A stretch of 64,000 nt of DNA, taken from contig CDRNST010000319.1 of the NCBI GenBank assembly GCA_977016875.1, forward strand, positions 310,001-374,000. Direction: 5' to 3'. Under the pieces are notes generated by a model. It was not told where the DNA came from and did no database searches. It saw nothing but the letters and a program-made list of their open reading frames with translations. The translations under genes were made by a program, and so were the position numbers. This stretch comes from Pavona decussata (Eukaryota). Below are positions 35,298-63,474 of the stretch, piece by piece; the stretch's first letter is position 1; each line of letters starts with the position of its first letter.

Positions 35298-36428
35298 TTA
35301 GACGTTACCTACAAAGAAAAAAAAAAGAAAAAGAAAGTTGTTAAGTTTTAGCGGTCTTGAGCTTGGAGAAAAACCCAACCCTCAGGTACAAAAAGACAAG
35401 GGTTGGTCCATTGTTAATGGGCATTTAGAGAAGATTGGGCTAGATTTACTTCATAGGTGTCCGAGAACGGTACCTTACGAAGCACGACTTTCAGACATTT
35501 TTGAGGGAGAATGCAAGGTTTTTGTCATGTTACCATTGAACGATGTCGTACAATGCTGACGAAAAATAACAAAGTGTTCCATTCCATCACACTCTGAATT
35601 TCTATCATGAAAACAATACAACATCCCAACAAATTTCGTTAATTATAGTTTTGGGTCGTATTCAAGATGGCGGCCATTGGCCTCACTGGTCCACAGCTGT
35701 GCCAATAACATGAATTCTCATTCCAGGTAAAATCTCTCATTTACTGCTAACTCCTGTTCTGGTCGAGTAACATATACTGCATTTAATTTCTGAGTTTAAC
35801 TGCCCAGTGTAGGGGCAACTGACAAGATCCAATCTTGAAGGAATATTTAAGAAAAGGATTCACCTAGCCTTCCATACTACGTACCGTCTCTGTGACCAGC
35901 GGCCAACAATGAAGTCTCATTCGGGTGAATTAACTTTAGCTCCCTCCCCCCCACCCACCCCCTGAAAAACGTTTGCCCGTACGCAGATGGTTGGGTTTGT
36001 GTATGTCCAGTCCATGCATGTGCTATTTATTCTTTACATGCAATGTGACGGAAAAAGTAATTTTAATGTATGTAACAAATAACTTAGTTGTTTTTCACAC
36101 AGGGAACTTACAGTTGAAGCAGGTCTTAGCACACCAGTACTTGGTGGCTTCCGGGTACCTGTTGCAATAATCTTGAGTATAGCCCTTGCAATTATCTCCC
36201 CACCTATCAACACAGTTTCCTGTATTGTCATGGAAAAAAAGGTATTGATAATCACTTATGCGCAACATAAGGTTATCAGCTAATCACAGTGACAGCGAGC
36301 TTATTGAAACAAAAAGTTCATGTAATTTTATTTACGCAAGGAGTCTCGTTATTGGAACTTATCGTTCTGTGAGTTCTCTCCTGTCAGAGGTTTTACTCAT
36401 GTTGTTTTTTCTCCTCTAACGAAGTTTA

Positions 36429-36463
<35 letters not shown>

Positions 36464-60600: not shown

Positions 60601-63474
60601 AACGCCTTGTCAATAAATCAATAATGATGTACAAGATTGTAAATAATATGGTTTCGGAATATCTTAGTCCACGCTTTGTCTTTCGTTCTGATACTTTAAC
60701 TTATAATCTAAGAGATAGTGATGGTACACCCACTATCCCACAGCCACGCACTAATTATTGTAAAAGAAGTCTGTCTTACAGCGGAGTTGTACTGTGGAAT
60801 AGTCTGCCCTTAAATATTCGAAAGTCGCTGTCTCTTAATTAATTTAAATCTAAGTTGAAGAATCATGATTTTGACAGTAGTCTTACCTAAATTTTATTTT
60901 GTTTTTATACACGGCTTCCTTGTAAAGCAGGGTTTTATCATTTCTCTTATTGTAGTAGCTATTTACAACATTAATTTCAGTTAGGTAGTTGGAATTTAAA
61001 TTAAATGTTGTATAGTCCTGAAGGAAACACCGTGTCTAAATAAAGATTTTACCTTACCTTTACCTTACCCCACAGATTTTTCAGGGGCGGATGACACTGA
61101 GTCATCACCAACTTGGCAAATCATCGAACGCACTTCGTAATCCTTAATTATTACAAGCACAAAAATGATGTATTATTCAGTAATGACACAGGGAAACACG
61201 GAAAAAGAAATTGCGAGTGCTCCTATCAAGAGTCGAACTTAAGACCTGCCGATTACTAGTTCGGATGCTCTATCACTGAGTTACAGGAGACTCGTGGGAG
61301 CTAAGGCCAAAAAACTAGGTTCATGGGAAAAACACCCTGCATACTGCAAAAAACGGTATTTTTCCATAGAAATCAAATTGAGAATCTTCTGAAAGCGTTT
61401 TGTAATATTTTTATGTACTTAGAGGACAGATAGCCATTCACACAGTTCATTCAGGTTGGACTGTGTTGCCAGAACTCAATCGAGCAGTTTCCAATTGAGT
61501 GTCGTTAAACCAAAACCTGAAAGTAATCACTCTGGCCGAATCGCAAAAGATGTAAACAACACAGCGAGCTAATTAGAATTGAAAGCAAATACTAAACCTC
61601 TTGTGTTGAATTAATTACTTTCCTTCCCAAATTTCAGATCTTGTTGCCTTCTTCCCTCTCGATGCCGCATATGGTACCAAGGAGATCAAGAATCGTGTAG
61701 CCCAAGGGGTCCCCAGTGGGGTTAGTGTGGCTGCAGGCCCTGACGGTACAGCTAACAGCGCTTACGAATTTGCTGGAACTGCAGACAGTTATATCGAGTT
61801 TCCCAACTCTGAAGGAGGGCCTTTGGATATGCGCCACTCAATGACTATGCTCTGCTGGGTGTACTTTAGTGGGCAAGACGGACCTCTCTTTAACTACAAG
61901 ACGAGTGGACACTGGGGGGTGCACCTGTGGGTGGTAGGCGGCCAACTTTTTGTCCGCTTTACCCACCGAGATTACAGTTTTACAGGCGCCTTACTTAACA
62001 CACATTTAGCTGGTGGATGGAAGTTTGTTGGTGCTTCCTATGACGGCGGTTCTGGTGACGCAAAGTTGTGGGTCAATGGAGTCGTGGTTCAGACATTGAA
62101 CATCGGAAAGGGTCTTGATCTAGCCACACAGGACAACATCAGAATGGGAGTGAAGACTGGTGATGTAAGGTACTTCAAAGGAAGGATCACCCAGATGCAG
62201 GTGTACAGCAGCGCCTTGAGTCAGGAGCGAATAGAGAGATTGTACAAAAGGATCAAAGGTATGACTTTGCCATTACAACAAAGTAATTATTTTGGTTTTT
62301 GTTTCTTCGACACTCCATCGAAAACCGTTCTATTTTCCACAGTATTTTGACCGTCTTTCAAACAATAATTCTTAACCAAAGGCCTCTTAAAGACAAACGC
62401 TAAGCTAAGATCAAGGTAGATCTTTCCGCTTACTTAATTGCTGTTTCAGTACGAGCACAAAAGTCGTTTTAAAATGACACCACACATGATATTCATGTGT
62501 TTTCTTTAATTCGCCTGTTCGCTTTTCTATAACAGAAACGCACACTGAGATTGATGCTAAAATAATAAGCCATGGTTAAAAAAGACACTGCTTGTCCAGC
62601 AAGGAAAACTTCGCTTTTGTAATAAATACCATTGAAATATGGCCGAAAGGTTGAAATATTAGCACGAATGCTTTAATCCTGAAGGCTTTCTCGACTAATA
62701 ACTACTCCTGCTACAGGCTCTTTTCCTGATCCCCATACACTTTTCGAGCGAACCAAGTTTTTTCACAGCTCATGCAACGAGTGACGTTATATTATGCCGA
62801 AGGTCTTCATGTATTGAATTCATTACTTTCCTCATCATGTTCCAGATCTTGTTGCCTTTTTCCCTCTCAATGCCACGTTTGGTACCAAGGAGATCAAGAA
62901 TCGTGTCGCCCAAGGGGTTCCCAGTGGGGTTAGTCTGGCTCCAGGCCCGGACGGTACAGCTGACAGCGCTTACGAATTTGCTGGAACCCCAAACAGTTAT
63001 ATCGAGTTTCCCAACTCTGAAAGAGGGCCTTTGGATGTGCGCCACTCAATGACTATGCTCTGCTGGGTGTACTTTAGTGGGCAAGACGGACCTCTCTTTA
63101 ACTACAAGACGAGTGGACACTGGGGGGTGCACCTGTGGGTGGTAGGTGGCCAACTTTTTGTCCGCTTTACCCACCGAGATTACAGTTTTACAGGCGCCTT
63201 ACTTAACACACATTTAGCTGGTGGATGGAAGTTTGTTGGTGCTTCCTATGACGGCGGTTCTGGTGACGCAAAGCTGTGGGTCAATGGAACCGTGGTTCAG
63301 ACATTGAACATCGGAGCAGGTCTTGATCTAGCCACACAGGACAACATCAGAATGGGAGTGAAGGATGGTGATGGAAGGTACTTCAAAGGAAGGATCGCCC
63401 AGATGCAGGTGTACAGCAGCGCCTTGAGTAAGGAGCAAATACAGGCAATCTACAAAAGGATTCAAGCGGTGTAG
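54696..63474 (+). CDS. MMP gene J: signal peptide, propeptide, catalytic domain, short hinge, two tandem LamG/pentraxin-like (ConA-fold) domains, ~682 aa
   Basis: Exons 54696-54776, 55277-55543, 56533-56639 (GC donor), 57275-57588, 59561-59590, 61638-62258, 62846-63474. Motifs: [22 protein letters not shown]. Phases are compatible throughout; joining of the LamG exons is inferred. Confidence 0.8.
57739..58110. mobile_element. Kolobok-like MITE with TTAA TSD
   Basis: TTAA|AGGGGAAGTTTCATG ... CGTGATACTTCCCCT|TTAA. Confidence 0.75.
58505..58805. repeat. (TATGG)n / (TACAG)n pentanucleotide microsatellite
   Basis: Direct reading. A short orthologous tract lies at 37540-37580 in gene G. Confidence 0.95.
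60365..61050 (+). mobile_element. 3' fragment of a CR1/L2-type LINE with a (CCTTA)n tail
   Basis: [17 protein letters not shown]...YNLRD...[22 protein letters not shown], with internal stops. Confidence 0.82.
61165..61346 (-). mobile_element. SINE family 1 copy upstream of the first LamG exon
   Basis: Reverse complement of the SINE at 36635-36870. Confidence 0.8.
61638..62258 (+). CDS. LamG-like domain exon 1 (phase 1-1, 207 codons)
   Basis: LVAFFPLD...[16 protein letters not shown]...MTMLCWVY...[10 protein letters not shown]...AKLWVNG...[16 protein letters not shown] matches the Laminin_G_3/pentraxin-like pattern. Confidence 0.88.
62846..63474 (+). CDS. LamG-like domain exon 2 (terminal, stop TAG)
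   Basis: Near-identical duplicate of the preceding exon, open from the acceptor to the stop. AATAAA at ~63523. Confidence 0.88.

Follow-up and report, generated by a model that had tools for sequence, protein, structure and literature searches.

A probable chimeric matrix metalloproteinase gene in Pavona decussata, with laminin G modules in the place of a ShK-type tail

Our analysis concerns a cluster of matrix metalloproteinase (MMP) genes without hemopexin domains in a 64,000-nucleotide stretch of the Pavona decussata genome (NCBI GenBank assembly GCA_977016875.1, contig CDRNST010000319.1, positions 310,001 to 374,000; C319:310001-374000 of the assembly that we label G000), hereafter called the window, within a searched genome of 602 Mb. 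The window contains seven zinc-site motifs and nine cysteine-switch motifs, and the named proteins most closely related to those of its genes are from Actinostola, Nematostella and Pocillopora ('hatching enzyme'), all of them sea anemones or stony corals. Two of these genes, G and J, share one catalytic chassis and part ways in their tails, G ending in a ShK-like domain and J being followed by two laminin G (LamG) exons. J is a chimeric locus in which two partial gene copies were joined intron to intron, and we consider it likely that they are spliced into one protein with an MMP part and two LamG modules. The 5' half of J (exons 1 to 5) is a duplicate of a ShK-tailed, hemopexin-less MMP gene that ends in the phase-1 intron before the position of the ShK exon. 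The 3' half was copied as a segment from a gene for a secreted multi-LamG protein, one of an array on contig C180, and starts 44 nt upstream of an internal phase-1 acceptor. The imported part comprises the penultimate and terminal LamG exons, the stop codon, the poly(A) signal and the downstream flank, with the signal-peptide exon of the donor left behind. Splicing from the hinge to LamG1 and on to LamG2 would give a 682-aa secreted zymogen carrying two ConA-like modules instead of a ShK knot.

The gene models of G and J were rebuilt exon by exon from the sequence, and the joined models were used for translation and for the ratio of nonsynonymous to synonymous divergence (dN/dS); database searches were made with single exons, one at a time. 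An initial annotation of the window had described the two genes as inverted paralogs with exons of 81, 267, 107 and 314 nt, alignable introns and promoters, and a common hinge start, and both the rebuilt models and the self-alignment bear this out. Each gene has these four exons in turn, followed by a phase 1-1 hinge exon that begins GPNTGG and differs in length between the two (66 nt in G, 30 nt in J). A sensitive self-alignment is collinear through the promoter, the four exons, parts of every intron and a (GGTAT)n microsatellite in intron 4. Exons 1 to 4 of the two genes have an identity of 84% at the DNA level and 78% at the protein level, a synonymous divergence (dS) of ~0.35 and a dN/dS of ~0.36. 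Both retain an intact HExxHxxGxxH zinc site and Met-turn (AIMYP), as in the matrixin family (Pfam PF00413), together with a hydrophobic N-terminus, a PG_binding_1 domain in exon 2, a PRCGxPD switch and, ahead of the catalytic domain, an RxRR site, and both are thus predicted to encode secreted MMP zymogens. The G model comprises 319 aa with no internal stop. Intron 3 has a conserved GC donor (AG/GCAAGT or GCGGGT; window positions 39717-39718 in G and 56640-56641 in J), not only in these two genes but also in a second version of J (J') and in a further paralog (K), both described below, and the GC-AG intron has been kept through all duplications.

The likeness between the two genes stops within the intron that follows the hinge. 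The last block of G-J homology ends at 36880 in G and at 59729 in J, 128 and 139 nt past the respective hinge exons, which agrees with the ~130 nt given in the initial annotation. In G, a short interspersed nuclear element (SINE; 36883-36642) begins right after this point. Homology between J and K reaches 59806, beyond the end of the G-J homology, and the donor-derived sequence starts at 61594; the MMP-side breakpoint therefore lies in the 1.8-kb interval between 59806 and 61594. Downstream of the J hinge, over the ~27 kb that separate it from K, we found no ShK exon, whether intact (a finding that by the initial annotation would have refuted its reading) or as a relic, and no homology with the 3' flank of G.

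The source of the new tail could be traced by the genome search that had been suggested for it. LamG1 has at least 130 relatives in the genome, the closest of which (84-90% protein identity) form a tandem array at 885-948 kb of contig C180. All ten C180 loci examined begin to match J sharply at 61594-61596, 44 nt before the LamG1 acceptor, and because the introns upstream of other LamG exons are alignable over more than 340 nt, the cut at -44 represents a real breakpoint. One unit is collinear with J from LamG1 through the intron, LamG2, the stop codon and 1.5 kb of 3' flank (61594-65036 against C180:892492-896032), and pieces of C180-type sequence run on to ~70 kb in extended coordinates. The J tail and the C180 units are ~89% identical in DNA, intron, stop codon and 3' flank included. 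Genes of the array consist of a 52-nt signal-peptide exon (MFALCLLLLTAVELKAQ, 17 aa, with a phase-1 donor) and two to five LamG exons with ...CAG/AT acceptors and G/GTACG donors, and their terminal exon ends in ...AV and a stop codon, as J does. What J took over from a C180-type gene is thus its final two exons together with the 3' flank, and not its signal exon, no copy of which was found near J; a search of the junction intron for alternative first exons returned only two weak candidates, both within a long interspersed nuclear element (LINE). Among 27 genomic matches to MMP exon 4, J is the only one that adjoins LamG exons. The locus thus has two recognizable parents with breakpoints in introns, the MMP parent lineage being represented by G and K and the LamG parent by the C180 array. 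The imported region holds a third LamG exon as well (C319:378719-379338), which carries a 2-nt insertion, a 3-nt deletion and a Q-to-stop change and has no upstream partner; its C180 counterpart (C180:939820-940434) is intact, and the copy beside J would have decayed because there was nothing upstream to which it could be spliced.

The initial annotation had cast G and J as sister genes that had exchanged tails and been caught shortly after exon shuffling, and here our results depart from it. The paralog K is situated beyond the window on the forward strand (C319:391800-405919, continued at L036:8861-13200), ~27 kb past J. Exons 1 to 3 of K occupy C319:391.9-397.2 kb; the G000 contig breaks off within intron 3, which is filled with transposable elements, and the rest is found on the ENA contig ctg101355, a 99.99% match to C319. 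K and J can be aligned over 4.3 kb at 83% identity, against 1.5 kb at 79% for G and J, and K closes with a degenerate terminal exon for two ShK-like domains, after which its 3' flank resembles that of G. Since K is closer to J, G and J are not sisters in the strict sense, and since K bears a ShK-type tail, the real comparison is that of J with K plus G. The proposed branching order (G,(K,J)) rests on intron alignability and not on the exon-4 tree, in which G, J, J' and K form a polytomy. K itself is a pseudogene: its exon 2 is interrupted by an in-frame TAA, its hinge exon no longer has an acceptor, and it has taken up insertions on the scale of kilobases.

Further relatives speak to the direction of the change. 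Exon 4 of J is closest in the genome to that of G (78% in protein) and then to those of genes on C90, C30 and C28 (64-67%), and the paralogs on C30, C28 and C85 are followed by ShK exons that pass the Pfam threshold. Another assembly (ERZ25067868), from another species, contains two tandem G/J-like genes (75-76% in exon 4) with ShK exons after them and no LamG, one of these ShK exons having a pattern near-identical to that of the G tail. Given ShK tails in K, in the C30, C28 and C85 genes and in the other assembly, and no ShK relic between the J hinge and K, the ShK tail is ancestral and the LamG tail derived in J only, J having lost or never received the ShK exon. The event is accordingly a replacement on one side and not a symmetric swap. 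Nor is the capture recent, because the noncoding divergence from the donor amounts to 10.9% and the G-J dS to ~0.35.

The C90 gene (G000:C90:2708600-2714957, L013) has HEFGR in place of HEFGH, with loss of the second zinc ligand, and its exon 2 is interrupted by a TAA, so that it too is likely to be a pseudogene. Intron 3 of K spans ~9.5 kb filled with elements of GIY-YIG/reverse transcriptase (RT) type, and a 360-nt element with an internal inverted match in the 3' region of K (L036:12470-12827) occurs in dozens of genomic copies at 98-99% identity, which makes it look like a very recently active element resembling a miniature inverted-repeat transposable element.

The two tails differ in how securely they can be named. 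The terminal exon of G has six cysteines spaced C-x7-C-x7-C-x10-C-x3-C-x2-C (36217-36098), the six-cysteine arrangement of ShK domains, and the same spacing class is present in the cross-species counterparts. Its match to the Pfam ShK model (PF01549) spans the whole model but reaches 14.2 bits (E 0.065), below the cut-off of 20.9 bits, and its positional homologues score 21-34 bits; for this reason it is best called a divergent ShK-like domain. The tail exons of J pass Laminin_G_3 (PF13385) with 63.3 and 66.4 bits against a cut-off of 27.6, and have weak matches to Pentaxin too. At the level of DNA the earlier description of two unrelated phase-1 tails is supported, the tail of G being a ShK-like domain that falls short of the family threshold. 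An AlphaFold model of LamG1 is an all-beta jelly roll with a C-terminal helix (pLDDT 79.9, pTM 0.82), whose best Foldseek matches are the lectin-like N-terminal halves of the receptor-binding domains of clostridial neurotoxins (TM 0.65-0.74, probability 1.0) at a sequence identity of 13-18%; a sequence search with LamG1 against solved structures gave no significant E-value. The predicted model places LamG1 in the ConA-like lectin fold and nothing more specific. We infer that the LamG modules likely serve as an exosite or targeting unit for a glycan or matrix ligand, altering the site at which the protease acts or the substrate that it cleaves.

The coding capacity of J is consistent with a single gene. 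Every junction is in phase 1, so that splicing of the hinge to LamG1 and LamG2 gives an uninterrupted frame, and the resulting model of 682 aa (2,049 nt) has no internal stop and is followed by AATAAA ~50 nt downstream of LamG2. In the noncoding parts, the J tail and the closest donor unit have diverged by 10.9% with 9.7 indel events per kb, a rate that predicts ~12 indels in the 1,250 nt of the LamG exons; we observed two, both of 3 nt. The dN/dS of the LamG exons is 0.33-0.50 between J and the donor and 0.24-0.40 among the C180 copies. A second version of the locus, J' (ctg101999), is 91-95% identical to J and absent from G000, and has seven exons of equal length, every splice site, the GC donor and the open 682-aa frame. 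J and J' differ by no exonic indel, with 5.8 expected in the LamG exons (Poisson P ~0.003), and in the propeptide their dN/dS is 0.28. The junction is present in three independently assembled contigs from two assemblies, two of them at 99.99-100% and the third at 91-95%, and so is not an assembly artefact.

We considered J' as the orthologue of J from another species and rejected this, since two ENA assemblies each contain both versions, with comparable read coverage; for the same reason J' is taken to be either a second haplotype or a paralogous segment of very recent origin. One version of the J locus is represented by L034 and L035 (ctg101999/ctg132790) and the other by L041 and L044 (ctg101355/ctg131463), of which G000 keeps one; G-type open reading frames (ORFs) are also present on a 1.79-Mb contig. 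LamG1 and LamG2 of J (61599-62253 and 62807-63461) are 93% identical with a dS of 0.08, a closer match than that of either exon to the C180 exon in the corresponding position, and each haplotype has private residues common to its LamG1 and LamG2. The identity and the shared private residues point to gene conversion that continues to act on this pair of exons. In exon 4, the difference between J (57275-57588) and J' (L034:5570-5883) is 12.7%, twice the flanking noncoding value of 6.1%, and the changes cluster at the substrate-cleft strand (GPSNELAHAFTH in J') and after the third zinc histidine, a pattern that could be adaptive or the result of micro gene conversion.

A fused transcript from the hinge through LamG1 and LamG2 is, on the evidence of frame and splice sites, probably made, and the mRNA and its protein are what we infer from the anatomy of the locus. 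Several observations weigh against this. Between J and J' the LamG exons differ by 3.0-3.1%, against 3.3% in the flanking noncoding sequence, with a dN/dS of 0.6-1.1, suggesting that recent amino-acid constraint on them is weak or is masked by gene conversion between LamG1 and LamG2. The 2-kb junction intron, with its LINE and SINE, could carry cryptic exons or poly(A) sites, and the RNA-type sequencing runs hold only 0.02-0.04 of the sampled words. No protein combining PF00413 with PF13385 was found among the Pfam-checked HMMER representatives for exon 4, in word searches with the LamG1 and exon-4 ORFs, or in the ESM Atlas, a weak negative since the length limits of these searches are ill suited to such proteins. 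A word search that started from the catalytic region of P0152, which proved a poor query because it belongs to a sea-urchin MMP, likewise returned no such protein, and literature searches on MMP-LamG combinations found nothing.

These observations would fit a J that is effectively tail-less, its transcript ending after the hinge by intronic polyadenylation or by read-through into ...GKEIGEN and a stop seven codons into the intron, with the LamG exons an unexpressed or separately expressed partial duplicate that lies by chance in a compatible phase. The neutral-like substitution rate of the LamG exons between J and J' favors this explanation, and so does the company that J keeps: other MMP genes of the window appear to end right after the catalytic exon (the catalytic exons of D, E and F end in ...LYG followed by GT), and K has the same intronic stop after the hinge. 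The phase match, moreover, needs no selection, the phase-1 acceptor being inherited from the donor. Harder to reconcile with a tail-less J are the frame kept over 1,250 nt at ~11% divergence from the donor, while the third LamG exon decayed, and the retention of all splice sites in both J and J'; separate expression of the LamG exons, for which neither a donor signal exon nor a convincing alternative first exon was found, would give a non-secreted fragment. We therefore regard a tail-less J as unlikely, though deserving of serious weight. That the whole locus is a young pseudogene, open in frame for want of time and not by selection, is suggested by the three broken copies (H, I and K) in the interval from G to K and by exon 4, in which J and J' differ twice as much as in the flanking noncoding sequence. 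Against this stand 2,049 nt free of stops and frameshifts in two diverged copies, the histidine triad, Met-turn, cysteine switch and furin-type site intact in both, the propeptide dN/dS and the fate of K, which at a similar age has acquired a stop, lost an acceptor and taken up large insertions, and we consider it very unlikely. A reversed polarity, with LamG ancestral and ShK the newcomer, or a mis-assembly, was considered because the initial annotation did not settle the direction of the change; we found nothing in its favor, and it is hardly credible in view of the ShK tails of K, C30, C28, C85 and the cluster of another species, of the three contigs that carry the junction, and of the singularity of J among the 27 exon-4 matches. 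A probable chimera with a fused transcript thus remains our preferred reading of J. A further step, that J is a functional, lineage-specific MMP in which LamG modules replaced ShK and whose substrate-cleft exon, changing about twice as fast as the neighbouring noncoding sequence, may have been retuned toward another target, is a tentative proposal that we hold possible but somewhat short of probable.

Table 1. Features of genes G and J and of the partial copies between them (window positions)
Feature	Positions	Strand	Details
G exon 1 (ATG at 41112, signal peptide)	41032..41112	-	81 nt, GT donor
G exon 2 (propeptide, PG_binding_1, cysteine switch PRCGVPD, RTRR furin-type site)	40430..40696	-	267 nt
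G exon 3	39719..39825	-	107 nt; GC-AG intron after
G exon 4 (catalytic core with Met-turn; phase-1 end)	37836..38149	-	314 nt; Peptidase_M10 1.4e-34
G hinge exon GPNTGGGGGVQTPAPTPGPTGS	37008..37073	-	66 nt, phase 1-1
tRNA-Thr-derived SINE	36642..36883	+	antisense to G; unique G-J homology ends at SINE edge
G terminal exon (six-cysteine ShK-like domain, stop)	36095..36219	-	125 nt; counterpart in another species (L045)
Fragment H	44483..45388 (region 43838-45388)	-	copy of J exon 2 (91% aa) and upstream DNA, no exon 1
Fragment I	47981..52059	-	degenerate exon 2 with stop (~48.0 kb); inverted copy of J upstream region (50.08-52.06 kb)
J exon 1 (ATG, signal peptide)	54696..54776	+	81 nt
J exon 2 (propeptide, PRCGDPD, RERR furin-type site)	55277..55543	+	267 nt
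J exon 3	56533..56639	+	107 nt, GC donor AG/GCAAGT
J exon 4 (catalytic core, Met-turn)	57275..57588	+	314 nt; Peptidase_M10 6.5e-33
J hinge exon	59561..59590	+	30 nt, phase 1-1
Last MMP-type intron stretch	59591..59806	+	homologous to G until 59729, to K until 59806
5'-truncated non-LTR retrotransposon (LINE) in junction intron	60356..61069	+	many genomic copies, 83-94%, common 3' end
SINE body in J junction intron	61164..61347	-	related to the SINE in G by family, and oriented alike with respect to the gene
Block copied from C180 LamG array	61594..64000, on to ~70 kb beyond window	+	breakpoint 44 nt before LamG1 acceptor
LamG1 exon (Laminin_G_3)	61638..62258	+	621 nt, phase 1-1
LamG2 exon	62846..63474	+	629 nt, begins in phase 1, stop TAG; counterpart of the last exon in C180 genes

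Other elements of the window give a picture of its wider history. The interval from G to J holds two incomplete MMP copies, H and I (Table 1). Fragment H adjoins an ORF of the tail of a retrotransposon RT, and fragment I has lost its exon 1 by deletion and holds a 2-kb copy of the J upstream region, such that I and J form a head-to-head inverted repeat with its centre near 52.5 kb. Copies of the tRNA-Thr-like SINE family are present at window positions 7474-7839, 36642-36883 and 61164-61347 (Rfam tRNA 40 bits; ARAGORN anticodon AGT), with two tandem copies near gene A. Self-alignment also reveals a tandem repeat at 24974-26838 with units of ~520-630 nt and 85-98% identity, in or beside the MMP gene whose zinc site is at 24642.

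In most cases exon shuffling is deduced from domain architectures so old that their parents and breakpoints can no longer be traced, and here it can be read in one assembly. If the tentative proposal of a functional, retuned J is correct, the locus represents a documented natural case of a new protease specificity gained by exon shuffling, in which the donor, a sister with the old tail, the broken by-products and a second copy all survive. If the fused mRNA exists, a secreted protease would have gained a targeting unit in this way, and partial duplicates that end in introns of the same phase would suffice, with no need for precise insertion. On the same condition, the availability of one catalytic chassis with a ShK tail, with two LamG modules or with no tail would provide a tractable trio for studies of matrix and defence biology in cnidarians.

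A chassis with exchangeable tails is already known in outline. Public relatives of this MMP clade carry ShK, double ShK, PAN, TSP1 plus ShK, or hemopexin tails, and vertebrate MMP23 carries a ShK-type toxin domain; it is the architecture of Peptidase_M10 with Laminin_G_3 that was absent from the database searches made, subject to the length limits given above. Since relatives in the clade have such varied tails, the modular protease system with interchangeable tails put forward in the initial annotation is sound at the level of DNA, where the intronic breakpoints also support it, and becomes conditional where it extends to the splicing of the hinge to LamG1. The ShK-tailed MMPs, including the anthozoan P0143 and P0161 found here, resemble G, K and the C30, C28 and C85 genes in having a propeptide, a catalytic domain, a short linker and a C-terminal ShK domain with no hemopexin; J differs in lacking ShK, and the ShK of G is divergent and under the Pfam cut-off. 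With the multi-LamG (pentraxin-like) genes of C180 the J tail shares 84-90% of its protein sequence, but it stands behind MMP exons and without a signal exon of its own. Its likeness to the binding domains of clostridial neurotoxins is one of fold, seen for LamG1 in a predicted model, and implies no toxin function. A further parallel is the classical shuffling by which extracellular proteins acquire phase 1-1 modules, as described by Patthy's rule, with which J has in common the hinge, ShK and LamG modules bounded by phase-1 introns, the recombination points within introns and a secreted product. It differs from the classical scheme in that two partial duplicates were joined and no module was inserted into an intact gene, and in that the donor, the recipient, the sister with the ancestral tail and the decayed by-products can still be recognized side by side in a single genome.

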